Shown here in pieces: positions 11,150 to 57,700 of a stretch of 64,000 bases of DNA. Each line of letters opens with the position of its first letter. The stretch's first letter is position 1. A model generated the notes under the pieces. It did no database searches, was not told the origin of the DNA, and saw only the letters and a program-made list of their open reading frames with translations. The stretch covers positions 1,054,001 through 1,118,000 of the forward strand of contig NW_025766936.1 of NCBI RefSeq assembly GCF_003918875.1, written 5' to 3'. Made by a program: the position numbers and the translations under genes. Source of the DNA: Haliotis rubra. Taxonomy: Eukaryota.

Positions 11150-12130
11150 GTCGTGATAACATGCCCTGTATCAAATCTATGTACGATATATAACACAAGA
11201 TCTGCAGCAAATCTGCATGTGACATAAAACACCAAGTTAGGAGCAAATGTGTTATATAGAGCACACAATCTGTAACATGCCAGTGTGTGATACATAACAC
11301 ATGATATGTGGCACAACAGAGTGTAATACATCACATGTTCTGTAACGTGGTGGGATATACAGCACATGATCTGTAACATGCAAGTGTGTGATACATAACA
11401 CATGATATGTGGCACAACAGTGTAATACATCACATGTGCTGTAACGCAGGGATATACAGCACACAATCTGTAACATGCAAGTGTGTGATACATAACACAT
11501 GATATGTGGCACAACAGAGTGTAATACATCACATGTGCTGTAGCGTGGTGGATATACAGCACACAATCTGTAACATGCCAGTGTGTGATACATAACACAT
11601 GATATGTGGCACAACAGAGTGTAATACATCACATGTTCTGTAACGTGGTGGGATATACAGCACATGATCTGTGACAAGACAGTTTCTGACATATAACAGC
11701 AGGCTTGCAGCAACAGAGTGATATATAACACAATCTGTAGGACAACAATTGTGATATCTAGCACATGATCAGGAGCATAACAGGGTGTTATATATAACTA
11801 CTATGTAGCATAGCAAGGTGTGATATATATCACTACTAGTAGCATGACAGTGTGTGATATATATCACTACTAGTAGCATGACAGTGTGTGATATATATCA
11901 CTACAAGTAGCATGACAGTGTGTGATATATATCACTACTAGTAGCATGACAGTGTGTGATACAGAGCACAAGACCTGCAGCACATGTGTGATACAGAGCA
12001 CAAGACCTGCAGCATGACAGTGTGTGATACAGAGCACAAGACCTGCAGCACATGTGTGATACAGAGCACAAGACCTGCAGCACATGTGTGATAGATGACC
12101 GATCTGTAGCCTGTAGCACAACAAGGTGTG
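11150..12130. repeat. Compound degenerate minisatellite (units of about 120, 33 and 30 bp)
   Basis: Repeated blocks such as GTGTGATACATAACACATGATATGTGGCACAAC, TAGTAGCATGACAGTGTGTGATATATATCACTAC and ACAGAGCACAAGACCTGCAGCAC. Overlapping Cys/His/Tyr-rich ORFs are repeat artefacts. Confidence 0.9.
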
Positions 12131-14214
12131 AGATAAGTCTATTACAACACTATGTCATATGTAACATGATCTGTAGTATAACAGATATTGGGTGATCTAT
12201 AGCACTGTGTTTGTAGCAAGTCTTTGTGAGATGGCAATGGAACAGGTAGTAATCTGGAGGAGACCACATACTCAAGACCACACAGAGGTGAATGACATTA
12301 TCCGGAAGGGAGCAGCATGAACACGTCCCTTGCTGGGAGCTTCCTAGGGTCTGTGATCCAGGCAGATGAGAGAAACAATGTTAGTCAGTCTTCAGATGGC
12401 TTGACATACAATACATACCATTTATACTTGGAGACAGTTGGTAAGCAAGCTTATAGGTAACATTGGCACTGAACATACTAAGAGCATGGGCGGAGGAAAC
12501 ATTCAGTGTATATGGGACATGAAACTCGCCTGTACTCTACTCGCATACATGAATGACAGCTTCCACCACTACACAATAAAGAGCAAGCAGACATACACAC
12601 GTCAATCAAAGATACTATCACTGTCTATGTTCACCTAACACTGCATTATCACCATCTGTGAAGGCTCCCAATCAGACTGGACAAAGAACTGTGTGTCATG
12701 ACACACGATATACCTGAAGTTTTTATGGCTTACAGCATGTTCCCTTGAGAATAATTTGGGTGATCCCAACTCCAAGCACAAACTGCCAACAGCTCAGAAC
12801 CACAGTTACTTCAATCATATTTGTTATCATCAAAGAATTCTGTAACAAAAATCGGAGAGTCTCCATTTTTAAGATATTATCTCGTTGACCACTATCAAAA
12901 TCCAAATATCTTTATCGTAACACCAAATAAAAAACTTTCTCCACTCTTTCAGTAATGAACAAAAGTCTACATTCTAAAGAAGGAATAAATATTCCATCAA
13001 ATGCCATCAACTTTACACACACCCCATCAGGATTACAAATTATCACTCAAGCTGTCAACACTTTGGTCCTGAGACTCTGCCAGAGCTTCACACTGACAAC
13101 ATCACTATTTGTGACCTACTGGGGTGTGCCCATGCCTCAACTAGGCAGTCCACAAAAACTGAGCCCCGCTCATCAACAATAAACAAAACCAAGCATAAAA
13201 TAGTTACAGCCATATTGACTGGCTACAGCAGACTAGCAACACAATTCCATAGTAAAATCAACAAGGCATGCACGGTTGGTCGGTGAGGCATGACATGTAG
13301 CTATCTACCACTTGCGACGGTAGTGCTGCACATGTCGAAGGCCAGAAGGTGACATTTTGGTCATTGGCAGAATCTATAGTAATCTGACAGACGTATACTA
13401 CCTTCCTTTCTGTCACATTCAACAGCAGAGATGTGCTATCCAGAGGACACCGGATATGATGTCACTATCAACAATAGGATGTGACATCAAAATCAACAAC
13501 AGAAAGTGTTGTTTCCCCTAGAAGACAGGTTCTGATGTCACAATCAAACACACGGTGTGATGTCACAATCAAACACAGGTTCTGATGTCACAATCAAACA
13601 CACGGTGTGATGTTACAACAGAAGACAGAGAATGATAGCTATTGGATGGCTAATTCCAACTGAATATTCCACTATGGCTAACAAGCACTATGTTAATGAT
13701 ATGCTGTTTTCAAGGATGACTAGTTAGCAGCATGTACTCATGTTCAACATCAGTAAATGCAACATTAAAGCATATCAGATTACTTTGGCAAGACATACAG
13801 TATGCCCTTTCCAATTTCTTGATCAGTAACCCACTGAAAGTCAGTTAAAACCTTATCACCAATAATGGACATACTGAAAGATTACAAAATAGCCTCAAAC
13901 CAGAATGGAATCTTTTGTCAATCTCTAATCATAAGGGTGTAACCAATAGTTCATGTATCAATGCCTAAAATTATTGCAAATTTATTCTTGTAGCAAAAGT
14001 TCCACCACTATGGGTCAGTTCTAACAGCTGAGAGTAGAGCACAATTGACAAGGTCTTTATATTAATGTGCATCAAGTCTCTTACCCCAGTATATTAACAT
14101 TATCTTCAGTGGAAATAGTTAACTCCCAATTTTACCACTTCTAAACAAACTTATCATAGTCAAACATCAAATGGCATCCTATGGATACTGCAATCCTTCC
14201 ATCACTTAAACATA

Positions 14215-15510
14215 CCGTTACATCCCTTACAGTTGATTATTCAGACATATCAGTACATCCCTAGCAGTTCCTTATTCAAACATATTGTTACATCCCTAGC
14301 AGTCAAAATTAAAACATATTGTTACATGCCTAGCAGTTCATTATTCAAACATATTGTAACATCCCTAGCAGTTCATTATTCAAACATATTGTTACATCCC
14401 TAGCAGTTCATTATTCAAACATATTGTTACATCCCTAGTAGTTCATTATTCAGACATATTGTTACATCCCTAGCAGTTCATTATTCAAACATATTGTAAC
14501 ATCCCTAGCAGTTCATTATTCAAACATATTGTTACATCCCTAGCAGTTCATTATTCAAACATATTGTTACATGCCTAGCAGTTCATTATTCAAACATATT
14601 GTTACATCCCTAGCAGTTCATTATTCAGACATATCAGTACATCCCTAGCAGTTCATTATTCAAACATACTGTTACATCCCTAGCAGTCAAAATTAAAACA
14701 TATTGTTACATCCCTAGCAGTTCATTATTCAAACATATTGTTACATCCCTAGCAGTTCATTATTCAAACATATTGTTACATCCCTAGCAGTTCATTATTC
14801 AAACATATTGTTACATCCCTAGTAGTTCATTATTCAAACATATTGTTACATCTCTAGCAGTCAAAATTAAAACATATTGTTACATCCCTAGCAGTTCATT
14901 ATTCAAACATATTGTTACATCCCTAGCAGTTCATTATTCAAACATATTGTTACATCTCTAGCAGTCAAAATTAAAACATATTGTTACATCCCTAGTAGTT
15001 CATTATTCAAACATATTGTTACATCCCTAGCAGTTCATTATTCAAACATATTGTTACATCCCTAGCAGTTCATTATTCAAACATATTGTTACATCCCTAG
15101 CAGTTCATTATTCAAACATATTGTTACATCCCTAGTAGTTCATTATTCAAACATATTGTTACATCCCTAGCAGTTCATTATTCAAACATATTGTTACATC
15201 CCTAGTAGTTCATTATTCAAACATATTGTTACATCCCTAGCAGTTCATTATTCAAACATATTGTTACATCCCTAGTAGTTCATTATTCAAACATATTGTT
15301 ACATCCCTAGCAGTTCATTATTCAAACATATTGTTACATCCCTAGCAGTTCATTATTCAAACATATTGTTACATCTCTAGCAGTCAAAATTAAAACATAT
15401 TGTTACATCCCTAGCAGTTCATTATTCAAACATATTGTTACATAACTCGCAGTTCATTATTCAAACATATTGTAACATCACTAGCAGTCAAAATTAAAAC
15501 ATTGTTACAT
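14215..15510. repeat. Minisatellite, 35-bp unit (33-bp variant), about 37 copies, just downstream of the MOB1 stop codon
   Basis: Unit CATATTGTTACATCCCTAGCAGTTCATTATTCAAA, with variant ...GCAGTCAAAATTAAAA. Confidence 0.97.
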
Positions 15511-15601
15511 CTCTATCAAGTCACAAGATGACTGTAGACTCTGCAGAATCACTGTAAACATTGAAAACCATTAGAGCCAGGTGGTTCCTGGGGATTGGCA
15601 T

Positions 15602-18600
15602 CTATCGGTCCTTGCTGGTGAGTTTATCAATCAGCTCCTGTAAAGGGGCTAGTTCCTTTCTGTCTATGAGGTTGAACTCCTGCACAAAGAAGATGAAGTG
15701 CTTGAAGGATGTGTTGAGGTGGGCCTCCTCACTCAGCTGGACCACCTCCTTGAAGTGCTGGTGGTAGATATGTGCATACACACGAAACAGGCGCTTCAGG
15801 ATCGTTTTGGCAATGGACAGGAAGTTCTTTGGAAATGGCACACCTTGAATAAAAAGAAGCAATTATACTTTGTTTACAGGTAAATCATAATGATAAAATT
15901 ATTAAAATCTAAATATTTTAGATATTTAAATACTTACCTTACCATAGGTCTTATGCTTATTACCTGAAGCTCCGCTTAAAAGAGATCAGACAGTCGTTGA
16001 TTCGCCATTCTCTAGAATGGCTGCCTCAAGTATCGACGAGTGTACAGGAACGGAAGTGACGTGATCTCCCCTCTCTGCGCTCAAGCGTGGTCTATCCAAA
16101 AATTACTTTTACTGACCACGTCCGAAGAGCCCAGAGAAGGGAGGAGCATCAAGCGTTGGGAGGGAGTTACCGCCCTATTGTAAGGTAAGTATTTAAATAT
16201 CTAAAATATTTAGATTTTAGTAAATTTTTAACTCACCTTACCATAGGTCTTATGCATATGGATTCGACAGTAGGATGGCGGTGTCGGTGTCGGGTGTCGT
16301 CCCATGAAGAAAAACAAGACCACATGCCAAGGGAAACCAAGGAAACTAACTGAAAGCAGACTGTCGCAGGAAGCGCCTGGAACAAGAAACAGATAGTGAC
16401 CCAAGGAAACCCTAAGGAAAACAATACACCCAGGGCGTAAGTTATCCTAAAGACCAGAAGGTAAGGAGAAGTAGTTACCTAATGGGCTGTAGGTCGGGTG
16501 GGTTGCTGGGCAACCCTCAGTGGACCAAAAGATTGCAGACCTTCAACATCCTCGACGGCCAGATCCCGCAGGTAGTGGCTAGCGAAGACAGTAGAGGACT
16601 TCCAGGAGCATCCCTCCATGATGGCTGGAACGGTGCAGTTCCTATGGAGAGCCATGGTGGACGCCAGGGCCTTAATCTCGTGCGGGTTATTGGCTGTAGG
16701 ATGAGGCAGATCTAGTGCATCGTAGGCAGCCAGGATGGTCGTACGTAGCCAGAGCGCAATAGTATTCCTATTAACTTCACCTTTTGCCGCACAGGAAAAC
16801 AGGATGTACAGTCTCTTACGAGAGTGCCTCCTGGATGATGATTTGGCAATATACATCTTAAGCCCTCACAGGACAAAGCAGCTGTTCCTCAGCGTTGTGG
16901 GGTCCTAAAATGGAAGCCAATGGAGGAATGGAGAACATTCTGTCTAGTTGTCCTGGCAGCTGGTTCTTAGCCACGAAATCCCAAAGCAGTCCCAAATGAA
17001 CAAGCCCATGCTGTGACTTCTCAAAATGCACCCTGGTGACATCCAAAGTGTGGATCTCGCTGACTCTAGCTGCCGTGGCCAAGGCCAAGAGAAACGCTGT
17101 CTTCCTGGAGAGGTTCTCGAATGAAGCAGTGTCTAAAGGCTCGAAAGGTGGATCTTTCAGATGCCGGAGAACAATGTTAAGGTCCCAAGGAGGAGGACGA
17201 AACTTTGCCTTCTGGTCCTCCAGCTTGAAGGCTTTGAGTACGGCAATGAGCTCCGGCACCTTGGAAATCTTTTTGTCGCACTTGACCGCCAAAACAGAGT
17301 TAAGAGCCGATAGTGTTGCCCTTGAGACGCCGGGACTTCCGAAGGAAAAGAAGGAACTCTGCTATAAACTGAGGAGAAGCTTTCAATGGGTCCTTGGACT
17401 TCTGTGCACAAAACTTCTCAAAGGAAGTCCACTTATCATCGTAGAGTGATCTAGTGGAGACTCGATGAGCACGAGCAATAACCTTGGCTACACCTGTGAA
17501 GAAGCCCTTGGCCTTCAGTGCCTTTTGCAGATGATCCAGCCATACAGATGAAATCGAGTCGGATCAGGATGCAGCTGTCGACTGCGGATGCCTGAGCAGG
17601 TGAGGCCACTCTGGTAACTGTTGCGGACTTCCTTCAGCGAGACGGCGCAGATCTGGGAACCAGGTTCTGGTTGGCCACCAAGGCGCGACCAAAAGCAGAT
17701 GAATCGTCTCTGTCTGCTTAACCTTTGCTATCACTGCTGGCAGCAGAACTGGTGGTGGAAAGGCGTATGCGTCCAGACCCTCCCACGACAAGGACATGGC
17801 TTCGACTGCCCATGTCGCCGGATCTGGAACCGGAGACACGTACAACGGATTCTGTTTGTTGAACCGAGTCGCAAACAGGTCGATCAGAGGACGGCCGTGA
17901 CTGTGACATAGAAGGTTGAAAGCTTCTGTTGGCGACGGCTTGCTTGGCCTTGAGAGAGCGTCTGCTAGGACATTCTTGCACCCTGGAATGTACCGGGCTC
18001 TGACTGTGATGCCATTGTTGTCCAGGAGACTGGCCAACAGGAAGGTCTGCTCCAACAACTGCTTGGACCTGGTCGTTCCCTGGTTGCGAATCAACCACAC
18101 CACCGTAGAATTGTCCGACGCTATCAGAACCTTGGTGTCCTGCAGCAGAGGCGTCCAGTGTCGAACCGCTAGAATGACTGCTTGGAGCTCCAAATTGTTG
18201 ATATGCCAGCCTAGGTCGGCGTCGGACCACAGCCCCGAGGTGGTCTGGTCGTTGAGGTGTGCACCCGGACCCTGAAGAGACGCGTCAACGAAAAGTTCGT
18301 GATCGTGAACAAACTCTGTCAAGGAGACTCCTACGCAGACGTTCGACTTTACAGTCCACCAGCGGAGGTAAGCGTGGAGATGCAGAGGTAGAAGGAACCT
18401 CGACTGGAGGTCGTCGGCTTGGATGTAAGACAATAGGAAGCGCTGTAACGGTCGGAGCATCAGACGACCTCTGAGCGCCAAGTCCTGGGCTGCGGTGAGG
18501 AGACCTAAGAGGGACTGCCATTACCTGAGCGTGAGCGGCTGGGACAGACCTCGACTGGCGAAACTGACAATTTTCCTCCAGCGATCCTGTGGAATCCTGA

Positions 18601-21600
18601 CAAGGTCGCAGTGAGTCAGGAACAAGCCTCCTATAAACGTCAGTTCCTGGGACGGCTCGAGGTGGGACTTGTCTGATTTGATAATCCACCCCAGTTGTTC
18701 TAGGAGACGAATGGCAAAGTCCATCTGTTTGCAAAGCAACTGAGGGTCGAGGTGGTTCATGAGACAGTCGTCTATATAAGGGTCGAAATCGATGCCCCTG
18801 AGATGGTGAAACCGGGTGATCGGCGAGGTTATCCGAGTAAAAAAGTTTCAGAGGCCAATGCAGAAACAGGCTTCAACATCCTCTTGAGCTCTGCGTCAGT
18901 AGCCAACATCTTAGAGTCCTGCACTCGGTGAGAAGACTGTGGAGACCCGTTTAAGGGATTCATCATGAGCCGTGCCTCCATCAGCGAAATCCAGGCTATG
19001 TATCTTGTAGTCCCTTTGCGCGCGACTTAATAGTAGTATTGAGAGACAGTTTAGCAAAGTTGGCATCCAAAGAGGCCACCGCATCGGCCACCAGGTAACT
19101 GTAGGGGAACGTGGTCGTCGCGGCGAGCGGCACAAAGGAGGTGACCTTGAACGGTAGCGACTCCCACGAGTCGGCGACCTTCAACGTCTCTCCCTATCAT
19201 TGGGACGTCTGGGAGAGCGAGACCTGGAATCAGACCGGCGACAGCGATGACTAGTATCAGAACTTTGCTGGAGACTTCGAGAACGATGGCGCTGTCGAGG
19301 AGACCTAGAGTGAGACCGCTTAGAATGACGGAAACGCTCGGCTTCCTGGCGTCAGGAACTCTCTTCCAATAACTGACGCTGAAGATCCTCCTCTCGAGAC
19401 AACGTAGACACAGGAGCCTTCCTGGGGATATGGTAGTCTAACAACAGCGTTGGCATCAAGGGAGGCGCTTGTTGACACACCAATCCAGCAACATCAGAAC
19501 TAAGTGCCACGGCCGTCGGCGCTGGCTTGTGCTTCAACTGCTGCAGGCAAAAGGAGCGTCCTTAGAAGCTTCTGTACCTCCGGATGACATAAGGCATCTG
19601 ACTGAGATAAGTCCACAAAGGCATCAGACGGGCGCTGGGCATCAGCCTCCTTGGTGCAGGTGTAGACGTCTGTTCAGCTAAAGGAGAAGAGCGTCCGTCC
19701 GGCGTCCTTGGAAGAGAAGACCTGGAGCCTAACTACGAAGCAGGTGAAGACATCTTCCTCTTATGGTGCGACAATCGTTTCTTCTTGGCGGCGGTGTAAG
19801 CCTGGAAATCGGCGACCGATAACGGCGTACAAAAATGACAGCGCTCAGCAAGAGAACAGGCTACATTAGTGCAGTCCGGACACCAAGGGTGGGGATCCTT
19901 GGCAGACTTTTGCACCTTGCAGATACAGCAAAAGTGCCAGGTCATGCACACAAAGGCTGGAACACACGAAAAAAAAAGTGAAACGTAAAAACTATGTAAA
20001 CACACAGAAAAAAAAAACCTTCAGAGAAAAATGGAAACACCCCTGCAGCAAGAATGGGCACAACCAAGATGGCTGCCCCAACAGATCCGAAAAAGAGCGT
20101 GAAAAACAAGCACAACTTAGGCAACAATATCAAGAAATACAAGACCAAGCATGAATATTATGGTGAAAAAGACATAAGAGAATACAAAACACCAAACATG
20201 CCAAGTGGAGCGACACTCACGACGTGGAAACACACCCCACACCGAAGTGAGAAACACGAGGCAGCCAGGTAAGTGAAGTTTGCTTTAATTATGTTCTTCA
20301 CCCACACAGAGAAGAATATAGGATATAAAAAGCATACATACCTGAAACAAACAAGAACTTTAATATCTGAAAGAATCAGTAAGTAGCGAGCTAGCGAAAT
20401 CAAAAACCTCTCACACACAGTACGCTTGAAGTAAAAGTGATATTTGGATAGACCGCGCTTGCAAGGGGAGATCACGTCACTTCTGTTCCTGTACACTCGT
20501 CGATACTTGAGGCAGCCATTCTAGAGAATGGCGAATCAACGACTGTCTGATCTCTTTTAAACGGAGCTTGAGGTAATATGCATAAGACCTATGGTAAGGT
20601 AAGTTAAAAATATATATAAAAAATAAAAAAATAAACAGCAGTGGCTAAAAGGTTCACCTGCAAACCTTATTGTATGGTTTTACACTATTTTAGTACTAGC
20701 CAATCAACATAATGACACAGAACACCAGATATTGGGTGCACACATTAAACCCATGTGAAGAATCAAACCCATGTAAATGAGTGAGTGAGTGACTTTAGTT
20801 TTAAGCTGCACTCAGCAATATTCCAGCTATATGGCGGCGGTCTGTAAATAATCGAGTCTGGACCAGACAATCCAGTGATCAACAGCATGTGCAACGATCT
20901 GCGCAATTGGGAACCAATGACATGTGATCAACCAAGTCAGCTAGTCTGACCACCCGATCCTGTTAGTCGCCTAACCTTAGGGTTACTGAAGATCAATATT
21001 CTAACCCGGACCTTCAAAGGTTCCCAGGTAAATGAGTTAATCTTAATGATGATTCCAATACTATTTCAGTAACATCACAGCTTGTAAGCTTATTGCAGGA
21101 GAACAGCGTCCAGTAATGCCCTCAAGCAAAGACAGTACTGACAAACAAGGAAACAGAATCAAATAATACAGTCACTGTCCGATACTGACCTATTTTCGAG
21201 GGAAAGAGTGTTTCATCATCCAGCTGGTCCTGCACCCAGGTCATCAGGTAGTCGATATACTTGGGAGCCGAGCATTTGATGGGCTTCTTGATGGTCTGTC
21301 CATCAGCCCAGTGGTACTCATACTTTGGGCCCGCAGACATGACTGAACATGACTCCTCTGAGCAGAACTCCGTGATTGTGCCATACAGCATGTTGATTTG
21401 GTTGAAGAAGTCAACAGCTGGGGATGAAGTGAATAATGTCAGATCCTGATGCTTTCGGGGACGGAAATAAATTTTTGCCAACTTTGCCACAGATCACTCA
21501 TAAGGATGCTTAGGCATGTCCTTTAACATTAAAGTACACTAAGATTAGAATATTACCTTGGATCCATCATCCGACAACGTGGATGTCAATCTATCAAGAC

Positions 21601-36814: not shown

Positions 36815-37987
36815 GGCCCACTTGCACAGAACGATCTTAACGCTACAATTATTGTAAATCCTTAAGATCACGATCTTAGGCTTCGGCTACAATTGCCATC
36901 CACTTGCAATTGTAGGCATCCACTTGCACAAAGCGATTGTAAGGAGCTAAGATCATTGTAGTCTGTGACAAAAGGGCCTTCACGATAGTGTCTGTTACAC
37001 GCAAATAATCAGCTTTATGTTTGGAGACTGCTTTTATATTGCATAAAACTCTGTGGTTCGCCTCGACACTTCAACAACACAGAGAATGCACAACCGAGTT
37101 AACGTCGGATACATTGTTTTTAACTGTAGTGAACCTCAGAACTTTTGAGTCGATATCACAAAGTACTATTCAGTGTTGGAAAAGGGTGAAACAACATACC
37201 TTTTTGATAATCAAGGAAAGGATACTAGCGAATGGTGTCCGCGTGCGATCAACAATGGCCGTGACCTTTTCTTTAACTCAAGAGCAGATAATTTTAGTTA
37301 ATACGCAAGATGGGAGTGGTTTCCCTTGGCATATGCTGTTGCCGTTGTCTGTAATGCACAATCTCAGAGCTCTTGAAACATATATTTCTTTTCGGTCATG
37401 GAGTTATTTTGTCTTAGTTGTCCCCCGCCGCAACGCGGAACGGGGGACTATGTATTCAGCGGCGTCCGTCCGTCCCGATTCTTTTTAACGTGATATTTCA
37501 TGAACTGTTGTACCCACTGTCTTCAAATTTGGTGACAATCTACATTGGGAGATTATGCAGACACCAGTCGGTTTGGGTGACCTTGACCTTATTTTCAAGG
37601 TCACCTCAACACTTTGACCACTTTCAAACTCTTGTTAACGCGATATCTCATGAAATGTTGTACCCAATGTCTTCAAATTTCGTGACAGCCTACATTGGGG
37701 GATTACGCAGACACCAGTTGATTTGGGTGACCTTGACCTTATCTTCAAGGTCACCATGACACTTTGCACGCTTTTAACTCTTGTTAACGTTATATTTCAT
37801 TGACTGTTGTACCCAATGTCTTCAAATTTGGCGACAGCCTACATTGGCGGATTTCACAGACATCAGTTTATTTAGGTCACCTTGACCTTATTTTCAAAGG
37901 TATGATTAAAACTTGTTCGCATGGTGATTGTAAAGTTGATTGTAGGAGCCAAAGATTGTAACTAAGATTGCTCTGTGCAAGTGGGCC
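36815..37987. mobile_element. Non-autonomous PIF/Harbinger-like DNA transposon with a nested repeat element
   Basis: TIRs GGCCCACTTGCACAG / CTGTGCAAGTGGGCC with 3-bp TSD CTG. Internal 37415-37900 segment has a (GTCC)n microsatellite and about 3 tandem units of roughly 150 bp containing TGACCTTGACCT. Confidence 0.8.
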
Positions 37988-39738: not shown

Positions 39739-42700
39739 TCAGTCGATGAATGTCTGGGTCTGTGACTTGCCACACTTCCACATAGCATTAAGTAGTTTGA
39801 TGAGGCCGGTGTCCTTGGGTTTCTCCAGGCCCCGCATCACACGCTGCTTCATCACTGACACAAACTCCTTGTTACTCAGCTGGCCATCGTCTGGGTGGAA
39901 CAGGAAGGGAGTAAGTATGGTATAATGGTAATTATTGCAATTTTCTAGCAATTTCACACTGAGGGCACAAGAAGTGCGCTTTGCATATTGTGCCTGTAAT
40001 ATCATGCTGGCCCCAAAATGACCTACACCGACAATCAGAAAATTAGGATAGTAGTCCTGTCCAATTCAACAAGGAAATATGTGACTGCTTAATTTTCACA
40101 CATTTAACATTTATTGTCATTACAAATATGTTTAAAAAAAAGAACATAACGGGGAATCAAACATTAACACCTCTATTGTATGGCTGACATATTTTGGCTC
40201 GGCCAAAGCAGATTCAAGTTGTGTGTTCTATAGATAGTTGCCTGTGAAGTGGACTGACAATGTCATAGTGTGATGACAATCAAATACAGGGTCGCGGCAC
40301 TGACTTGTCATAACACGTTCAGTTACTTTTATCAATACATCTGTATCTTAAAATATATGCTCTCATACAAGTACGTAAATGTCCGCTTGTGTTTCTCATG
40401 CTCACAAGAATATGACCTCTTTACTTAACTAGTGCATTAGAACGTAGTTACTTGTACAGAGAGACATAGCTGTACAGGACTATAGTGAATAGCCTTGGGT
40501 AAAGTAGACATTGACTTCTTACTGTTTTCATCGAAAAGTGTGAAGACAACATCGATGACGTGATCGGACAGCTCAACATGGGCCACGGTGCGGGCAACAT
40601 GGCGAAATGTCTCTGAAAATGACAGAAATCAACATATATCTCATGTATTTCACAGACATTTGTCTCTTAATGCTGTACTCCTGACGGTGCTCTGTATATA
40701 CTGGAGCAGACAATCCAGTGATTGATATTATGAGTAATGATCCCCAATCTGGGTACAATGACATGCAATCAAGTCACTGATCAACCAACCCTTTACAATC
40801 ACTTCTAACAACCTGCGGGGAGGTGGGGTAGCCTAGTGGTTAAAGCGTTCGCTCGTCACACAGAAGATCCAGGTTCGATTCCCCGCGTGGGTATAATGTG
40901 TTAAGCCCATTTCTGGTGTCCCCCGCCGTGATATTGCTGGAATATTGCTAAAAGCGGCATAAAACTAAACTCACTCACTCACTCCAACAACCTGTACAGG
41001 CTACCAGTTCTAGTGAGTGAGTGAATGAGTGAGTATGGCTAGGCTACCACTAGGCTACACAGGCCCTCGTGTCTTTGTGAAGATTAAAGATGTTAAGAAA
41101 ACATAAAACATTTGAGATGAGATAAAGGTACACCGAAGTGCCCGGCCCTGTCATAATGTATAGTATTGTGTAGCATTTCGAGTCGGGGGTCAACTGAAAA
41201 AATATCTTTAATCTTCGCAAAGACTGTGCTAGGCTACCCAAAAGCCCTGCTACCAGTTCTAACACAGATCCCCACTGTTTACTTCATGGATGGAAAATAT
41301 GAATATACTTAGAAAACACCCTGATCAGATGAGAAACAAAGATAGATGTGTTTCAGTCTGACACAACAGGGCTGCAACTGGATTGAGCAGTGGACATCTA
41401 CAGTGTAAATAACAGTAGAATACCAATAAATACACCTACAATAATTAGAGGTTTCAAATAGATTTGATAAATGTAAAAAGTGGAAGGTGTGCTGATAAGT
41501 ACAATCATGGATAAAAGATTTTACCATGAATTTGTGAAATACTCAATTCTGATTAATCTTTGTGGCGTTCTAAAGGAGACAAACATCTTCAATGAAGAGC
41601 CATACAACCTTTAGATTCAACCATGATGAATATAACATCCTAATTGTATTTAACATAATTAAATCTACAGATACACTGAAAATTTTGTTCCTCATTGATA
41701 CCCCTCAAGCATCAGTCAGAATGCAGTAAACTAAATATTCCATGGCAAACTGGAAGATACATACCCATATCAATGGAGACACCCGCAAGGTGGTAGAAGC
41801 TGAGGGCGGTGTCCACGTCGTTGATGCTCTTCAGGAACAGCCAGAACGCTGTATACTCACTAAATCCAATACCCTGAAACAGCCAGATCACTGTTTACTT
41901 AATAAATGTGATACTACAAATCAGCCGGAATGCTGTGCACTTACTAAATCCTGTACCCTGAAACAGCCAAAAGGCCGTGTACTGACTACTCCCAATACCT
42001 GGGAACAACCAGAAGGCCTTGTACTGACTACTCCCAATACCTGGGAACAACCAGAAGGCCTTGTACTGACTACACCCAATACCTGGGAACAACCAGAAGG
42101 CCTTGTACTGACTACACCCAATACCCAGGAACAGCCAGAAGGCCTTGTACTGACTACACCCAATACCTGGGAACAACCAGAAGGCCTTGTACTGACTACA
42201 CCCAATACCCTGAAACAGCCAAAAGGCCGTGTACTGACTACACCCAATACCTGGGAACAACCAGAAGGCCTTGTACTGACTACACCCAATACCCAGGAAC
42301 AACCAGAAGGCCTTGTACTGACTACACCCAATACCCAGGAACAGCCAGAAGGCCTTGTACTAACTACACTCAATACCTGGGAACAACCAGAAGGCCTTGT
42401 ACTGACTACACCCAATACCTGGGAACAACCAGAAGGCCTTGTACTGACTACACCCAATACCTGGGAACAACCAGAAGGCCTTGTACTGACTACACCCAAT
42501 ACCTGGGAACTGCCAGAAGGCCTTGTACTGACTACACCCAATACCTGGGAACAGCCAGAAGGCTGTGTACTGACTACACCCAATACCCAGGAACAGCCAG
42601 AAGGCCTTGTACTGACTACACCCAATACCTGGGAACAGCCAGAAGGCCGTGTACTGACTACACCCGATACCCAGGAACAGCCAGAAGGCCGTGTACTGAC

Positions 42701-45700
42701 TACACCCAATACCTGGGAACTGCCAGAAGGCCTTGTACTGACTACACCCAATACCCAGGAACAGCCGGGAGGCCTTGTACTGACTACACCCAATACCTGG
42801 GAACAGCCAGAAGGCCTTGTACTGACTACACCCAATACCCAGGAATAGCCAGAAGGCCGTGTACTGACTACACCCAATACCTGGGAACAACCAGGCCGTG
42901 TACTGACTACACCCAATACCCAGGAACAACCAGAAGGCCGTGTACTGACTACACCCAATACCCAGGAACAGCCAGAAGGCCGTGTACTGATTACACTCAA
43001 TACCTGGAAACAGCCAGAAGGCCGTGTACTGACTACACTCAATACCCAGGAACAGTCAGAAGGCCATGTACTGACTACACTCAATACCCAGGTACAACCA
43101 GAAAGCCTTGTACTGACTACACCCAATACCCAGGAACAGCCAGGAGGCCTTGTACTGACTACACCCAATACCTGGGAACAACCAGGCCGTGTACTGACTA
43201 CACCCAATACCCAGGAACAACCAGAAGGCCTTGTACTGACTACACCCAATACCCAGGAACAGCCAGAAGGCCGTGTACTGATTACACTCAATACCTGGGA
43301 ACAGCCAGAAGGCCGTGTACTGACTACACTCAATACCCAGGAACAGTCAGAAGGCCGTGTACTGACTACACTCAATACCCAGGTACAACCAGAAAGCCTT
43401 GTACTGACTACACCCAATACCCAGGAACAGCCAGGAGGCCTTGTACTGACTACACCCAATACCTGGGAACAGCCAGAAGGCCTTGTACTGACTACACCCA
43501 ATACCCAGGAACAACCAGAAGGCCTTGTACTGACTACACCCAATACCCAGGAACAGCCAGAAGGCCGTGTACTGATTACACTCAATACCTTGGAACAGCC
43601 AGAAGGCTGTGTACTGACTACACTCAATACCTGGGAACTGCCAGAAGGCCGTGTACTGACTACACCCAATACCTGGGAACTGCCAGAAGGCCGTGTACTG
43701 ACTACACCCAATACCCAGGAACAGCCAGAAGGCCTTGTACTGACTACACCCAATACCAAAGAACAGCCAGAAGGCTGTGTACTGACTACACCCAATACCA
43801 AAGAACAGCCAGAATGCCTTGTACTGACTACACCCAATACCCAGTAACTGCCAGAATGCCATATACTGACTACACCCCATACCCAGGAACAACCAGAAGG
43901 CTGTGTACTGACTACACTCAATACCCAGGTACAACCTGAAGGCCGTGTACTGACTACACCCCATACCCAGGAACAGCCAGAAGGCCTTGTACTGACTACA
44001 CTCAATACCCAGGTACAACCAGAAGGCCTTGTACTGACTACACCCAATACCTGGCAACAGCCAGAAGGCCTTGTACTGACTACACCCAATACCCAGGAAC
44101 AACCAGAAGGCCGTGTACTGACTACACTCAATACCCAGGTACAACCAGAAGGCCGTGTACTGACTACACCCAATACCTGGCAACAGCCAGAAGGCCGTGT
44201 ACTGACTACACTCAATACCCAGGAACAGCCAGAAGGCCTTGTACTGACTACACCCAATACCTGGGAACAACCAGAAGGCCGTGTACTGACTACACCCCAT
44301 ACCCAGGAACAGCCAGAAGGCCTTGTACTGACTACACCCAATACCAAAGAACAGCCAGAAGGCTGTGTACTGACTACACCCAATACCAAGGTACAACCAG
44401 AAGGCTGTGTACTGACTACACCCAATACCTGGGAACTGCCAGAAGGCTGTGTACTGACTACACCCAATACCTGGGAACTGCCAGAAGGCCGTGTACTGAC
44501 TACACCCAATACCCAGGAACAGCCAGAAGGCCTTGTACTGACTACACCCAATACCAAAGAACAGCCAGAAGGCTGTGTACTGACTACACCCAATACCAAA
44601 GAACAGCCAGAATGCCTTGTACTGACTACACCCAATACCCAGTAACTGCCAGAATGCCATATACTGACTACACCCCATACCCAGGAACAACCAGAAAGCC
44701 TTGTACTGACTACACCCAATACCCTGAAACAACCAAACACTGTGTACTTAAATTCCTCCCCACCACCAAGATTAAATGAACAGGTCAAACCCAACCACAA
44801 GGGTTCCCATTACTCACCCTTGGGTTTTCCTTGAACTTCTTCTTCACTCTCTTCAACATGCGTAGTTTTTTCTTCTCTGGCATTCCAGCATATGTGATGA
44901 GGACATTGCCGAAGTCTTTCTCTGATATCGTGTCATCATCCTGCTTGTAGCGATTGAACTGAAACAGTCATTTAAGGAGCCTCATGACATCAAAATGAAC
45001 AGTACATGGAACACAATTGCCTTGCCTTCAAATGTATAATCGCCATTCAATGCATTCCTGTCAAATTATCCATCATTATTTAAATCCATAACAAGGACAG
45101 GGGAGACAACCTACCTCTATCTTGAGGATCTCTGTCTGGAGCTGTCTCTGGAAGTCAAGGAAACCTTGCACAGTCAACTTTTTCTTGCTGTCCACACCAA
45201 AGAAGTAGGTGAGGAGTGAAGAACTCATGCCCTTGTTGACACTGCCAGTGTTGGCATGGTCTCGGTGCCGCATCCCGATCGATGTCTGACTCTGTACCAC
45301 ATCGTGTACCTGCACACACACAGAGGGGCAAATACAATATACCCACAGTAGCCCCAGGATACATTTGTCAGTTTATCACAATGTTTAATTACTGGCCCTT
45401 GATTTGCTGTACCAACCAAGGATACACCAACACATGGGAATGGGCAAGGGAGGCAACTCATATTCCCTACAAACCATAGAAACAGCTAGTTTCAGAGGGC
45501 TTGCTTCGACCATCCTCCCCCCTGTGTTTTGAGCACAGATATCGTCATCCATTTGTGTCAAGATCGTTTAGTTGAGAGTCAAAATCGGGTTTCAATTGAC
45601 TTGCAGAAATAACAATAAAGAATTGGTAGGTTTCATGATAGGTGATCAATAGGCCTATCATCCATGATTATGTTCACATTAAGCTTTAATTGATTGCATG

Positions 45701-48700
45701 CGACGGTAGCGTAGCGATCGGCAAAGCAGGCGGGTGGGGTATACCGAAGTGTCCGGCCTTGTCATAATGTATCGTACTGTGAAGCATTTCGAGTCGGGGG
45801 TCATCTCAAATGTTTTACATTTTTTTTAACATCTTTAATCCTCGCAAAGACACGAGGGCCTGTGGTTTCAAAGGACATAAAGACATTCATTTTCTCTTAG
45901 AAGCTCAAACTGGGGCAGGTTTGTAACTTGCTTTCTGATCGGTATGCTGGACCCAGCAATATAACCAATCAAAGTGGCAGATGGAAATCAAGGGCAGACA
46001 ATTTGAGATTGTGTGAGAACCACGGGAATGGATCCAGGTTTTCATGCAGATGTACCAAAATGTTTGCCCTGGAGATATAGTTGATAGTATACCGTCTCAA
46101 CATGAACCCTTCCCTTAAAACCCTTCAGAGCTGAGAGGAAACGTGGGATTTCCCTGTAATGTGTCTTCAGATGGTGACTCTTGTAACAGCTAGCATTGTT
46201 ACTGGGCCATAACAGGAACCCCATCCGTATATTGTAGTCAACATGTGCTACGGTTTTTTGTGTTTGGTGCAGATTGGTCTGTTGTTCAGTCATTGGAGAG
46301 TTGCGACGTTTGTTCCTAAGTAACCTACCTACAAACACATTATCTTTTCTTAAATTATGAGCAGAAGTATACAGTAATCGATGACATTGAAATGATAGTC
46401 TGACCACCTTACCTTCTGGAATTCTGTGTATTCAACTTCCCCGTCACCATTTAGGTCAAACATTCGAAATCCAATCTCAAAGTTGCGAGGAGGTGCTATA
46501 AATAGATGTACCACACTGAAAATACTGTGAATCCAAACAAGCTCTTAGTAACAAGGCAAGTATACACAGAGCAATGTCAACAGTTTAACAATCGAGATGG
46601 TCACCTCGAGATGGTGGCTATCCAATAAGATGGCAGACCACCACACAAAATAGTTGACCTACAAACAAGATAGCTGAGTAATGGATAAGATAGATGACAA
46701 ATAGACAAGATGGCTGACTAATGGTCGACTGGTTTGTTGTTTTAAGCCACATTCAGCAATTATCCATCTATATGGCGACAGTCCGTAAATAATCGAGTCT
46801 GGACCAAACAACCCAGTGATCAACAGCATGAGTTGCAATCTACACACTTGGGATACGATGACATATGTCGGCCAAGTCAGTGAGCCTGACCACCCGATCC
46901 CAATACTCGCCTCTTACGACAAGCATGGGTTGCTCAAGACCAATTCTAATCCGGATCTTCCCAGGTTGGATGACTAATGGACAAGATGGACGGCAAAGAC
47001 AAGATGGATGACTTACTTGACAACACTGTGAGGAGGAAGATATAGTCAGAGAAGGAGATGAGGCCTGTCTGCCCCAGCCTGTAGAAGATGCTGTCGTGAC
47101 TCACTTCACACATGTCATCTAACTTCTCCCGCTGTAACATGTCACCACCAGGTTTTCAGTTAATGTGCGTCTGCTGCCCTCACTTTGACTACACTAGTAC
47201 ACTAATGCTAGCAGAACCTGCTGCCCAGAAACTATGGGAATGATGGACGCCAAATGAACAATGGTGTCTACATGTCCAATCATTGAACAAATGCTAAAAA
47301 ATATTATTGATGATTTCTTTAAGCAGTGAAACTAAACTGATAATTGTTCTATGCTAAACATGCTAATATGGTTAAATGTTGTCTTCAAAGCACTTAAAGT
47401 ATGACAATGTTAAACTGTTATCTGACATTATTACAACACAAAAATATAATATTAACTCCTTTTTTTTAAAAAAGCTAGAAGTAAATAATTGATCATTGAG
47501 CATAAATATTACTGTTATGCTGTTAAGAAGGTCAGTCAAATGTAATAATGGACAGCAGGGATCCGGAATCAAGCTTGTCTGATGAGCGACAAACCACACC
47601 ATCTACTACAACAATACACGTCGCCATCACTACACCTCAGCAGACAAGGCTGACTCGGGTCCCTGCCTGTCATTGGGGGGTCAGTTTCTCTCATCAAGCT
47701 CATCATATATACTGAACAAAAAAATTACAGATCATGAATATGTTTTGGATGATTTTTGTAGTAAAGACCAAGCAGACAATTTCATAAAAGTCCCAACGAT
47801 GTTTATGATCCTGACATGTTTTTGTTAAGTGTACACGACAAATTTTAATATAGCATCTACATAACAGAAGATGAACAGTTTCTATGGACACTAAATGGAC
47901 ACAACTGTTTCCGTGTCATCAATATAACAAAGTCACACAGTGGAAATGTCCAAAACGAAAGATATTAGTTTCAAAACACAATAATATGACTGAAAAAAGA
48001 ACTTAAAAAACTACAACACCACATCTAGACTAATAATTCAGTCAAAATAAACACATTACACACACTAAATGAGCACAGGAAAGACTTGTAACTGTTCCAG
48101 TGACAGAAATGAAAACACAAAGATTGTAAAGAGAAAATACGGGGGATGAGGTCGCCATTTTGAATACTCTCTAAATGATGTGTTTCACGATTCTTCGAAG
48201 TTGCACAAACGCTCCTCTACCAAATCAGGTAAACTTCACTGAGTACTAGGATTCAGATAGGAGCACACGCTTCACTGAAGACCATTCTACACCCTTTATT
48301 GCTCAAAAAGAAAGTTACAGGAAAATAATTTCAGTCTGGTAAACAGATAATTAACAGTAATTTCATGCATAATTGTTAGAGCCATGGGAACCACAACATA
48401 TTTTCCCATGAAATGACTTATTGAGAATTAACAGTATCAAGATGGCCGTTCCTCATGCCCAGCTTCCCGCAACACAACAGAACAGGAACATGTTTAGAAG
48501 CCCTACTTCGGTTCGGAAGGGGTATTGTACCCTTGTACCCTTGTACCTTGTAAGTCACTTGTGGAGGTTTGGGAGGGATATTGTACCCTTGTACCTTGTA
48601 AGTCACTTGTGGAGGTTTGGGAGGGGTATTGTACCCTTGTACCTTGTAAGTCACTTGTGGAGGTTTGGAAGGGATATTGTACCCTTGTACCTTGTAAGTC

Positions 48701-51700
48701 ACTTGTGGAGGTTTGGGAGGGATATTGTACCCTTGTACCTTGTAAGTCACTTGTGGAGGTTTGGGAGGGGTATTGTACCCTTGTACCTTGTAAGTCACTT
48801 GTGGAGGTTTGGAAGGGATATTGTACCCTTGTACCTTGTAAGTCACTTGTGGAGGTTTGGGAGGGATATTGTACCCTTGTACCTTGTAAGTCACTTGTGG
48901 AGGTTTTGGGAGGGTATTGTACCCTTGTACCTTGTAAGTCACTTGTGGAGGTTTGGGAGGGATATTGTACCCTTGTACCTTGTAAGTCACTTGTTGAGGT
49001 TTGGGAGGGATATTGTACCCTTGTACCTTGTAAGTCACTTGTGGAGGTTTGGGAGGGGTATTGTACCCTTGTACCTTGTAAGTCACTTGTGGAGGTTTGG
49101 GAGGGGTATTGTACCCTTGTACCTTGTAAGTCACTTGTGGAGGTTTGGGAGGGGTATTGTACCCTTGTACCTTGTAAGTCACTTGTGGAGGTTTGGGAGG
49201 GATATTGTACCCTTGTACCTTGTAAGTCATTTGTGGAGGTTTGGGAGGGGTATTGAACCCTTGTACCTTGTAAGTCACTTGTGGAGGTCACTTCTTGCTA
49301 TAACTGTTACCGATCGATCATCAATTTAGGTACTGTCAACTGGAGCAACTAATTTGCAAATAGCATGATACACTATCTCTACATCAAGAGTAAATGATCT
49401 CTGAACTCAACCGAAGACCTGAAAATCCTCTGTCCATAATCCTCTGTTTGTTCAGTGTGAGCTGATATATTTCAATATGACAGATACACCATGCTGCTAC
49501 AATGTGTAGAACAAAGCACTGATGAAACTCAAGTGAATCAAAGCAGTTGTTGTTAACAGTGACTGCTGGTACACAAAAAGTTACCTCAGTTTGACATATA
49601 AACTCATAATAAAATGACTGAATCATCTTAAATCTAATATATCTAAATTTACAGTAAGCAGGTACTTTTCTTAACTTCTGTAGCTCAGCACAATGTTACA
49701 GTCACATGTGTGGGCTAATGGTGCTACGTCAGATGCATGTGCCGAGTGTATATATCTGATATTGCACCTTCAGGCAGGGAATATGCAGTGGTGAGGGTTG
49801 AAAGATATGTTTATACACTTGTTACTAGTTGTGAAGCTTAATGATTGTGATCAAATCAGTCAAGTGTTTTTAAGGATAATACAAAATGGGTATAAAGATG
49901 CTACTATTGTATCCAACATGGCATAAAAACTAGCACAGCTACTTCCAAAGCTGGTTGCATTCTCACAAACATATCCAAGCATCTACAGTATGTATCATAT
50001 ATCAGAAGTCAAAAGGTGCATTTCAATACATGTATAACACTGGGGAACAAAGGGTTTCTGTACAACACAATAGCTGTGGTTAAAGATGGTGAATGTGCCA
50101 CACGTAAAGATGGCAGACGACAGCGCCATGCGGCGTTCACGCAGACAGGCTGCTGTAAACCAGGCCATAGAGTCTCATATGCACAGTCTGACAGGTAGGC
50201 AAACAGACATACAGATAGGCAGTCTGACAGATAGGCAGATAGGCAGTCTGACAGATAGGCAAACAGACATACAGATAGGCAGTCTGACAGATAGGCAAAC
50301 AGACATACAGATAGGCAGTCTGATAGATAGGCAGACTGACAGGTGAGCAGACAGCAGATGATGGTGACTCAGCATAAGGGTATAGTCAGCAAATCTTTAA
50401 GATGAAAGACTGCCTGGAAAATTGGGCTGCTTCCCTTGGTCAGATTCCCACAATGACAAAAACAATGCATGTAGAGAACCTGGTTATTAAATAGTATGAC
50501 AGCATGAAAAGGTTGAGTCAAGATTGAGAAAGTAATTATTATTGGTGACGGAACAGCAACAATGACGTTCCATTATGGTGATGTCACCTGGCATGGTCTA
50601 ATTAGGTATACATCCCTGAAACAGCATCTGGCCTTATGTAACTATGGCAACCTGAAGCACTGTATACCATGGAAACATACATCATTCAGCTGCACCAAGA
50701 GGGTCAGGTGTGGACATTCTCCAGCTGCCAGCACTCTCCCTGCAGGGAGGCCATCACAAGTTGCACACACTGTCTCCAGCTGGGGAACAAAAACATCCAG
50801 GTCGGTCTTCAGTGGAAGCTCCTATTGGGCCCAACGTATATATTGTTTGGTTGGTTAGGGTTATGCCAACAGGAAGAGGTGAAACCAAGACGGGTTTGAA
50901 AAACACACCTGACATACTACTGTCCAGGACAACATAGTCGTGGTGTCCGTGAATACATTAAGGCATACTCAGAGACATAAACAGGGGTGATGCCTGCAAT
51001 GTATGTCCAGACGGAGGGTAAACGCTTCCTGTGCACATATTGCTCTAAGGGGTTGTGAAACCACGAGTCACCCCCTCAAAATGTCACGTGATACACGAGT
51101 GTCATTCAATAAGGGTTTTGTAGAACGGAACTACTGTCAATCAGTGTGCCCATCATCACCATTACATAGATATCGTGTGACATAACTCAGCACACTGTTG
51201 GATACACCTTGCAGCATGTATGGGAGTAGTGCCTGGCTCCTTGCACAGGTGTGACCCAGCCATGTTTGCTGGTCCAGTAATAAGAAACAGGTTGCCATCC
51301 CTTGGTGGTGTATCAGTTACTGAGCCAGCTGTCAGCTAATTAGCTGATCCGTTTTACTACAGACAATAAAATGGGGACAACTAACACCAGCAAGAAAAAA
51401 GTCACTATTCGAAAAATTGAGGCAAAAACAATGACAATAAATATCAAATATCACTACTACGATTGAGAAAGATGGAGAAAATGGAAAAACAGGCAAGAAA
51501 CATGATTGTCCAAGTTGAAAAGTGTAAACATGCATAAAGACATTTCAATTTCTCTTACAGTTGCCATTCAAAGTAGGACTGAGAAAATGAGCCAACTACA
51601 ACAAGGAGCCATTCCCTACCACTCGGTGCCCTCTAAGACCTGTGACTTGATGCTCTATATGACAGCGGGAGAACCTTGCGAATATCCTGACGTTAAATAT

Positions 51701-54700: not shown

Positions 54701-57700
54701 TGCCAGTCACATTATGAAACTAGACATTTTGTGGCATGGCCGTAAGCATTTTGTTTAAACATTTTGTAAACCCACAGCTGAACCTTGAACGTAAATGACT
54801 TGACAGGGAAGAACACCATGAAGAGCCAGAACAAATCCTTGTCAGGCCCGATCCATTAAGTATTTGTAGCTACAACAGTTGTAAGTCAATTTCCAAACTT
54901 ACAAGAGTCATAGTATTAATACTTCTGGATCAGGACCATGAAAACAAGGATTTTAAACTATATAAAACACAGCTGGTGTATCCACAAACAAGCAGGAAGT
55001 ACCAGACATGTTCCCACTTTTAGACTACGTCTGAATGTTCCTGCTACATGACACTTGTCTTGGCTTACAATCAGTTTGTTCAATCTATAGCAGCAGCCCA
55101 GAGATTACAGATAGTGAATCTCCGACATTGTTGTCTTGGTCAGAAGTCAGTGTAGCTACACGTAATATGATAAAGATACTTGCATCTATTCAAATGCCAG
55201 AATTCAAAAGTTTTGCAATTTTGCAAATCGTGGATAGAGACCACAGAAGACATTCAATTCAAGACATGACCTGACTTCTACTTTGCCATAAATTAAATCA
55301 GTTGGAGGAATGACGAATTTCACAACATGACTGTACAATAGACATACCCAAACTTCCTGATAAAGAAATATTTTATGTGAATAAATTAATTCTATTATGC
55401 ACAGTGACAGCATGATAAGTTATATGAGTACTGCTACATGTATTTGTGACAGTAAATAGTTCTATGTGTGGACTGATGTTTGCTATGAGATATACTACAG
55501 TTGGTTATCAAGCATGTTTACTATTCTACAGGAGTCAAACTCATCTAGTATGTCTAGATTTCTAAAGTTGCACAAACATTTTCACACATTTATAAAAACT
55601 GACTTCATTTCACATATTTTTAGATCTGTGATTCATATTTTCTGAAGTTAAACTGTTAATGTCTAACTCAATGAATGTCCAATTCAATTAAAGTTTTCGT
55701 TTAAATTATTCATATGATTTACTGAATTATATTTATGAATTGTGATGAAAGTACCGCAGCAACAAGCTCCACCTACCTTAGGGTCGAACTTCCTAAACTG
55801 GTCGAGTCCGAGGCCTGTAAACACCAGACACACAATGGAGAAACAAAGGAATACAGAATCGGGATCACTTCATAGGTTTCAAGACGTTTCAATCCAAGAT
55901 CAGTTACTACTTGACAAGGAATCATAATAAAACACACACTGAATACAGGCCAGATAGGACAATCTATACAATACACCCATCTGGATAAACGTATCAATGT
56001 ATTGTATTGTATAAGCCAGTTCATATGTTACAGAAACTGTCACACACAGTTTCCTAACACCCAAAAGTCTAGTGATAGTACATGATACACATGTACACAC
56101 TAATATATGCTGTGCTGATAAGAATGTGTACATATTTTACCCATGTGGGGAATCGAACCCGGGTCTTCAGCGTGACGAGCAGACGCTTTAACCATTAGGC
56201 TACCCCCCACCAACAAACATGAGGTACAGGGGATCTATTACCAGTCACAAGGCACCACTGTGTATGTTGTGTATTACACTGTTACCAGTTACAAGGCACC
56301 ACTGTGTATGTTGTGTATTACACTGTTACCAGGTACAAGGCACCACTGTGTATGTTGTATATTACCCTGTTACCAGTTACAAGGCACCACTGTGTATGTT
56401 GTATATTACACTGTTACCAGTTACAAGGCACCACTGTGTATGTTATGTATTACACTGTTGTATATGTTGTGTACACTGTAACCAGTTACAAGTTACAAGT
56501 TACAAGGCACCACTGTGTATGTTGTATATTACACTGTTACCAGTAACAAGGCACCACTGTGTATGTTGTATATTACACTGTTACCAGTTACAAGGCACCA
56601 CTGTGTATGTTGTATATTACACTGTTACCAGTTACAAGGCACCACTGTGTATGTTGTATATTACACTGTTACCAGTTACAAGGCACCACTGTGTATGTTG
56701 TATATTACACTGTTACCAGGTACAAGGCACCACTGTGTATAGTCAGTGACGCAGAAATGGTCCTCCTCCGACCTACCTTCGGGCTGTTTGATCCCAGGCG
56801 TGATCGAACGCACAAAATCCTCTGGGGTCATGAACACTTCCCACACGCCAGAATTAATCTGCACCTTCAGGGTGGCAAAGTACCGGAAAATCTTGTCCGG
56901 GGTTGAGTAGGCTCGGATTCTGTCTTCATACCCAATGATCTGATCAACAAAAGATTATTATCTTAAGTCAGACAATTTAGCCCACAGGTGAACTGTGTTC
57001 TCTTTCATTGAAAGAGTACAGTATAGATGATAATTTGAAAGAGACACTGTCCAGTTTGTGTCCAGGTACAAATCAAATACATGACGTGTGACAGTTTTGT
57101 AAGTTTTTGAGTGTAATTCTCCATGTTCCTTGTGGCCCTGCTAACAGTTAGGCTCTAATACTCTGTGATTACCTTGCATGATTCATTACTCAAGACACAG
57201 GCTTGCTAGACAACTTTATCTGACATCTTGTAAAGTTGTTTTAAACCAAAAACACTCATTCCCACCTTCCGGTCTCTGAAGCCGATCTTCTTCTTCTTGG
57301 TCTTCTTGCCTTCGTCATCGTGCTCGACGGCCTCACTGGACTGCCCCTCCACAGCAGCAGCATCCACCTTCAACCACTTTGCCAGCATCGTCATTCTGAA
57401 ACAATGTCCCAGCAGCTGTTACATACATAGTTCTATGTATGTAGTTGTGGTAAAGTAGGACAGCTTTAAACTGTTTCAGTGGTGTCCCTGTCATATCCTG
57501 GGATGATGGCCTGGGCTTATGTAAAAGAACAACGAAAACCAAGGCCTACTTCCACCTATAGGGATGCTTGCAAGTGTATTCATGAGTGAGCACTTAGAGT
57601 AAACCTCCTATGTGACATGTTCCTAACTTGTCAAAGTGTACAACATAGGCCACAGACTTCAGACAAGAAACTGTACATGTTGCCTTGATGTTAGACAATG

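Follow-up and report, generated by a model that had tools for sequence, protein, structure and literature searches.

Minisatellites that straddle an exon-intron boundary have so far been documented mainly in amphioxus, where so-called mirage minisatellites occur in Adh3, the globin genes BflGb6 and BflGb9, TnC and PGBD5, on the donor as well as on the acceptor side (PMC3087553, PMC3902484). In these arrays, AG or GT signals are carried by many units but not by all of them, the splicing of the mRNA is unaffected, and the units at the edges escape homogenization (PMC3087553, PMC3902484). In human F7, the 37-bp variable number tandem repeat (VNTR) of intron 7 (intervening sequence 7, IVS7) begins with an element that spans the donor of exon 7, and its pseudo-sites, functional in principle, remain silent, outcompeted by the site adjoining the real exon (PMC1557585). 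The Rogers model, discussed in PMC3087553, describes the gain or extension of introns through tandem duplication of AGGT-containing exon sequence, and polymorphic intronic minisatellites have been reported in abalone (PMC6905558). The present analysis concerns a 64,000-nt stretch of the genome of the blacklip abalone Haliotis rubra (contig NW_025766936.1; hereafter the window), in which one intron of the MICU1 gene is filled by a 42-bp tandem array resembling the start of the following exon. This array is, with high probability, a junction-spanning minisatellite of the mirage type; exons, intron and array are all read on the minus strand.

As in the amphioxus mirages, the MICU1 repeats span the exon-intron boundary, many of the units, though not all, carry splice signals, splicing is regular, and the center of the array is homogenized whereas its edges are not. 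The differences lie in the host, a mollusc rather than a cephalochordate; in the size, 68 units over 2.85 kb as against two to six units in the globins; in the unit, which is 42 bp long, in frame and nearly free of stops; and in the orthologous intron of sister lineages, which is occupied by an unrelated array. With the F7 VNTR, the MICU1 array shares the arrangement of a junction-spanning minisatellite as a row of silent pseudo splice sites. The F7 array, however, lies on the donor side with few copies, and 5'-to-3' scanning has been shown for it experimentally, whereas the MICU1 array lies on the acceptor side and its selection rule would be one of branch site and exon definition. In line with the Rogers model, exon sequence has become intronic by duplication, and the duplicated junction supplies the splice signals; yet no new intron has arisen, and what has been lengthened is an existing one, whose conserved, ancient position is shared with Patella. 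Recursive splice sites, in which a 3' and a 5' splice site are juxtaposed within long introns, are also comparable in that 25 MICU1 units read pyrimidine tract-CAG/GTATTG (the slash marks the splice junction), but the donor half of these motifs is weak (6/9), the intron measures only 2.9 kb, and recursive intermediates were not seen in the assembled contigs, a source that would not reveal them.

The array and the exon start

In a tblastn comparison with mollusc MICU1 proteins, the complete gene extends over the minus strand from ~58170 to 39742, and the translated exons agree exactly with the RefSeq MICU1-like protein of H. rubra. The two exons flanking the intron, here called A and B, were searched singly, full-length comparisons being made with database proteins; both match human MICU1, exon A with E = 4e-5 and exon B with E = 1.4e-9, the latter far better than its match to MICU3. 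Tandem Repeats Finder (TRF) places an array of 42-bp period at 41836-44750 (69.6 copies, 89% matches, no indels), which extends 38 nt into exon B. Cutting in register yields 68 intronic units, from 44723 to 41874, comprising 66 units of 42 bp and two of 39 bp, so that the frame is never lost from unit to unit, and 42 distinct sequences are present among all 68 units. The 42-bp period falls within the unit range of about 10-160 bp that characterizes minisatellite-type arrays, and the start of exon B is itself an in-register unit of a repeat that crosses the boundary.

The consensus of the units is identical to the first 42 nt of exon B at 35 of 42 positions, a value reached by 0 of 20,000 shuffles with all 42 rotations tried (maximum 25), while the best match elsewhere in the window is 24; a gapped test of unit-exon similarity gave z = 16.6. 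An earlier sequence-only reading had described a MICU1 minisatellite of exon-like units about 2.8 kb long whose origin hinged on such a shuffle test, and both the description (68 units, 2850 nt) and the homology are borne out. The unit is confined to the MICU1 locus: a 22-nt pattern allowing up to 2 mismatches gave 66 hits in the 1.38-Gb genome, all of them here, and a 504-nt piece of the array used as a DNA query matched the genome at this locus only. An origin from a dispersed satellite or a transposon was rejected, since both searches are positive nowhere else in the genome. The intron contains no match to known RNA families at E values up to 0.1.

The sequence-only reading had further defined the unit as an acceptor followed by the first 14 codons of the exon. 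Homology and frame agree with this definition, but the 42-bp unit corresponds to the first 42 nt of the exon, and its acceptor-like tail aligns both with exon nt 27-42 and with the last 16 nt of the intron, which makes the definition one of two possible phasings.

The available sequence comparisons support the exon as the ancestral element and the source of the array, because the same residues and the same intron position recur in Patella and other molluscs, and the residues in human MICU1 as well. Patella, Gigantopelta and many other molluscs retain the residues of exon B, which are recognizable in the human protein too, and the phase-0 intron position is the same in Patella and in several mollusc contigs, whose read-through open reading frames end in Q before G. 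Derived bases common to the 66 core units stand at unit positions 9, 11, 16, 21 and 27, whereas exon-state bases are kept by the units at the edges, namely the degenerate unit 0 at the donor side, which is closer to the exon than to the core consensus (local alignment score 14 vs 9), and the two units adjoining the exon. Old edges around a homogenized center are the usual signature of array turnover, as are the two internal block duplications, which are typical of unequal exchange.

Splicing across the array

Splice signals are scattered through the array in many units, although not in all. Three units read TTTCAG/GG, for which the exon starts would be 44723, 42209 and 41957, the first of these decoys lying 94 nt from the donor; 25 units read YCCAG/GTATT (22 TTCCCAG, two TTGCCAG and one TTTCCAG); and 25 more, whose tail is TTCCTG, lack an AG at the acceptor position. 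All decoy reading frames meet in-frame stops, ending at 43347 or 41895. These particulars, including the AG/GT in many units, had been given in the sequence-only reading and prove correct throughout. As a donor, CAG/GTATTG matches the consensus at 6 of 9 positions and has no G at +5, as against 8 of 9 for the real donor.

Four public runs, all in the form of assembled contigs, were compared with positions 41500-45100 of the window, and two of the source organisms, B and D, are related abalones. A joint from 44818 to 41873 is the only one in a 1514-nt RNA contig of organism B, at depth 48, and likewise in a 537-nt RNA contig of organism D, at depth 228. It skips 2944 nt with GT..AG ends; both contigs represent spliced mRNA, because their loose ends fall exactly at the outer exon borders. 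No alternative joint into an AG of the array was found in the RNA contigs of these two organisms, a source that cannot exclude rare isoforms. In the 14 RefSeq isoforms read from H. rubra, H. rufescens, H. cracherodii and H. asinina, no unit-derived peptide occurs, and exon A is joined directly to exon B, as established by script for seven isoforms and in the alignment for the rest. Regular splicing at the authentic site is thus documented by contigs of related abalones, not of H. rubra, together with the RefSeq isoforms. The DNA of organism B is ~96% identical to the window and has both array edges, and its unit contigs reach a word depth of 100-1100, compared with 52-55 for the flanks; the presence of the edges and the high-depth unit contigs indicate that organism B has the same multi-copy array. 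The DNA of organism D matches the exons and only 14-18 nt of the intron, and its loose end at 44800 resembles, by eye, the unit type found in H. rufescens.

The whole array is removed within one 2944-nt intron, from donor 44818 to acceptor 41873, as is seen for the dominant RNA of a close relative, and several features may account for the silence of the roughly 28 acceptor-like copies. Of the four TTTCAG sites, the real acceptor alone is preceded within 50 nt by a yUnAy motif (TTTAT, with the A at -30); the core units have none, and the motif lies in the last, diverged, A/T-rich unit. A usable branch site is probably located in that unit, downstream of every decoy; if the branch point is there, every decoy lies upstream of it and is unable to compete. 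The real site is, moreover, the only one that leads into a conserved exon, whose own donor lies 109 nt further on, and this may favor it through exon definition.

RNA structure may contribute at other sites. At each unit junction the pyrimidine tract pairs with the head of the next unit in a predicted hairpin, which reaches -14 kcal/mol at CCCAG junctions (matched by 4/1000 shuffles) and -7 kcal/mol with exon-state bases, so that the derived core bases strengthen it. Such hairpins could bury the 25 CCAG sites and, as far as the folding model goes, could explain the amplification of the core variant by favoring slippage. Masking of the TTTCAG decoys by hairpins was also considered and rejected, the values being -2.6, -7.0 and -3.2 kcal/mol, compared with -7.0 kcal/mol at the real site. 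In a separate observation, a stretch of four units at 42504-42671 on the minus strand folds as RNA at -69.8 kcal/mol (z = -4.0 vs dinucleotide shuffles) with the same tail-to-next-head stem.

The sequence-only reading had also suggested that copy number and decoys could affect MICU1 output. The array would then act as a splicing dial, in which use of the decoys yields stop-containing targets of nonsense-mediated decay (NMD), or the CAG/GTATTG motifs serve as recursive sites, and copy number tunes the output. The decoys at 42209 and 41957 do nearly match the -14..+8 context of the real site, 25 copies juxtapose an acceptor with a 6/9 donor match, and every decoy frame meets stops. An RNA run of organism B also contains a 154-nt contig from inside the array, at a depth of 2.3 as against 48 for the spliced product, but pre-mRNA or DNA carry-over would explain it just as well. 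In the RNA contigs of two species the real joint is the only one, the decoys are unused in the RefSeq isoforms, and splicing is undisturbed by the amphioxus mirages and by the F7 VNTR; H. rufescens and H. cracherodii, furthermore, have the same mRNA junction with an unrelated array, so that no conserved sequence-specific role is indicated. The suggested effect on output is not supported by these data, which leave rare isoforms beyond the reach of contigs, and a regulatory dial is unlikely. Most likely, the MICU1 array has been tolerated as a by-product and itself serves no function.

The same intron in other species

Orthologous loci were fetched through the longest RefSeq isoforms. The sequence-only reading had proposed a comparison with related species. 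A homologous array is present in H. asinina, unrelated arrays are found in H. rufescens and H. cracherodii, and Patella has none. The 5' leader and three degenerate units, namely unit 0 and the two proximal to the exon, are common to H. asinina and H. rubra, while the H. asinina units match one another at 38.9 of 42 positions vs 33.6 of 42 for their match to any H. rubra unit. At the sequence level, this points to a common origin of the two arrays followed by concerted evolution, and the array is old, as both species have it. Its length has turned over between them, with 68 units in H. rubra and roughly 23 (by eye) in two blocks in H. asinina, each set homogenized in a species-specific manner. 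The inserts of the H. asinina array (L022:19357-19765 and L022:20121-20228) are non-repeat sequence; the first starts with a near-perfect inverted repeat of ~20 nt (by eye), which suggests that a small mobile element landed inside the array.

The arrays of H. rufescens and H. cracherodii extend from ~15-50 nt past the donor to within ~60 nt of the exon, and in H. rufescens the gap on the exon side is mostly a degenerate unit (by eye), except for the last 25 nt. Their unit was compared with the exon, with the H. rubra unit and with the leader plus the end of exon A; homology was rejected in every case, since no score exceeds those of shuffles, and a similarity noted by eye was dropped. A search of the H. 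rubra genome for this unit at up to 3 mismatches in 30 nt found none. In another mollusc (ENA assembly ERZ25069870, L024:1581-1730), the 3' part of the same exon is tandemly duplicated together with the donor CCAG/GTAAGG (75 bp x 2.0, 92% matches); here the opposite end of this MICU1 exon carries a junction duplication of two copies on the donor side.

The array probably arose in an ancestor common to H. rubra and H. asinina, by tandem duplication of 42 bp at the 3' splice junction of the MICU1 intron, a stretch corresponding to the first 42 nt of the exon. One diverged copy would then have been amplified to 68 units through replication slippage and unequal exchange, the center being homogenized while the edge copies stayed old. 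The sequence-only reading had likewise proposed that a short ancestral intron was inflated from its own 3' junction; the exon as the source and the exon-like edge units support the junction part of this proposal. A short ancestral intron within Haliotis is plausible and nothing firmer, because almost only repeats lie between the conserved intron ends in the genus; the Patella counterpart measures 738 nt.

A broader proposal would make exon-intron junctions of abalones, and perhaps of molluscs, preferred birthplaces of minisatellites, with the MICU1 intron inflated at least twice independently and the array length measurably altering the splicing efficiency or NMD load of MICU1, a gatekeeper of mitochondrial calcium; this is quite unlikely, and the H. 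rubra genome is very rich in minisatellites, which bears on any claim that junctions are hit beyond chance. It is very unlikely that this intron is a local minisatellite hotspot, with a hairpin- or recombination-prone junction, and that the exon-derived unit is merely its latest tenant. Such a hotspot would account for two unrelated minisatellites in the orthologous intron of two abalone lineages, and the inverted repeat at the junction, at -7 kcal/mol improved to -14 by the amplified core variant, and the two-copy 75-bp duplication seen in another mollusc where this exon meets its donor are in keeping with it; on the other hand, with at least eight minisatellite arrays in the 64-kb window, two in one intron may be chance, and one array could have replaced the other. 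That the length or structure of the array is an artefact of long-read assembly is scarcely credible, for although short-read contigs cannot span the array, the DNA of organism B contains both edges and high-depth unit contigs, an independent chromosome-level assembly of H. asinina has homologous units at the same place, and 42 unit variants with ordered block duplications are unlike collapse or stutter.

Several points nevertheless weigh against a junction-spanning minisatellite that is silently removed by splicing. The RNA data are contigs from relatives, not from H. rubra, and such contigs drop rare isoforms and are blind to NMD-sensitive products; of the two organisms that supplied RNA, D has the other type of array. 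In their local sequence the three TTTCAG decoys equal the real site in quality, and they are folded no more strongly than it is. The yUnAy sequence is a loose motif, expected ~0.7 times per 46 positions, and hence weak evidence of a branch site. The last 16 nt of the intron match exon nt 27-42 at 13, 11, 15 and 14 of 16 positions in four Haliotis species and at 8 of 16 in Patella; this direct repeat may have seeded the first slippage or may itself be the last partial unit.

Feature coordinates and significance

Table 1. Features of the MICU1 intron and its exons in the H. rubra window, and the corresponding introns of other species
Feature	Sequence	Coordinates	Strand	Description
MICU1 exon A	window	44958-44818	-	141 nt, 47 codons; ends in donor AGG/GTGAGT; matches human MICU1 and RefSeq H. 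rubra protein
GT..AG intron	window	44817-41874	-	2944 nt, phase 0; array = 96.8% (units 2850/2944 nt); skipped by the joint in RNA contigs X8 and X17
Non-repeat 5' intron leader	window	44817-44766	-	common to H. rubra and H. asinina (alignment)
Degenerate unit 0	window	44765-44724	-	terminates in decoy 1, TTTCAG, with a would-be exon start at 44723; conserved in H. asinina
Core array	window	44723-41958	-	66 units; mean pairwise identity 89.4%
Six-unit block	window	43883-43632	-	repeats units 2-7 (44681-44430); lag 19 units
Seven-unit block, tandem x2	window	43463-42882	-	291 bp; units 31-37 and 38-44; one 39-bp unit per copy; 7-unit run at >=41/42, lag 7
Decoy acceptor TTTCAG	window	42215-42210	-	exon start would be 42209; -14..+8 context nearly identical to real site
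Decoy acceptor TTTCAG	window	41963-41958	-	would start an exon at 41957, 84 nt before the real start; reading meets TAA at 41897-41895
Two old, diverged exon-proximal units	window	41957-41874	-	exon-state bases at diagnostic positions; A/T-rich; end in real acceptor; orthologous units in H. asinina
MICU1 exon B	window	41873-41765	-	109 nt; preceded by TTTCAG acceptor; first 42 nt (41873-41832) = array unit 69
H. asinina intron	L022	18644-20309		1666 nt; two blocks of homologous units of 41-42 bp, interrupted by inserts of ~410 and ~110 nt
H. rufescens intron	L020	15182-16344		1163 nt; unrelated 39-bp minisatellite, ~27 copies (15197-16287)
H. cracherodii intron	L021	17045-18895		1851 nt; unrelated 41-bp minisatellite, ~43 copies (17095-18827)
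Patella vulgata intron	L023	22877-23614		738 nt; no tandem repeat

Other minisatellites are spread over the window. Within MICU1, a 44-bp x 11.6 minisatellite at 56238-56740 starts 35 nt downstream of the donor at 56775/56774 and has CTG/GTAACA in each unit, and a 48-bp x 15.8 minisatellite with 97% matches lies at 48533-49288, in the middle of a large intron and away from junctions. Both were considered as junction-derived arrays and rejected by eye, the former showing no derivation from its exon end. At 2585-2845, a 23-bp array of 11.3 copies has CAG/GTGAG in each of its minus-strand units, and further minisatellites occur at 1546-2376, 11263-12093, 14208-15515 and 37480-37960, with periods of 56, 32-34, 35 and 150 bp.

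The MICU1 array belongs to the known class of mirage minisatellites and is notable for its size, its near stop-free frame and the unrelated array in sister lineages. By itself, the array reveals no new MICU1 biology. It adds a mollusc case to the class, and the comparison of four species shows that such introns turn over fast. It also provides a very large, clean natural set of dozens of near-perfect pseudo-acceptors that are apparently ignored, and therefore a test bed for 3' splice-site choice in which the position of the branch site, exon definition and RNA structure can be addressed.

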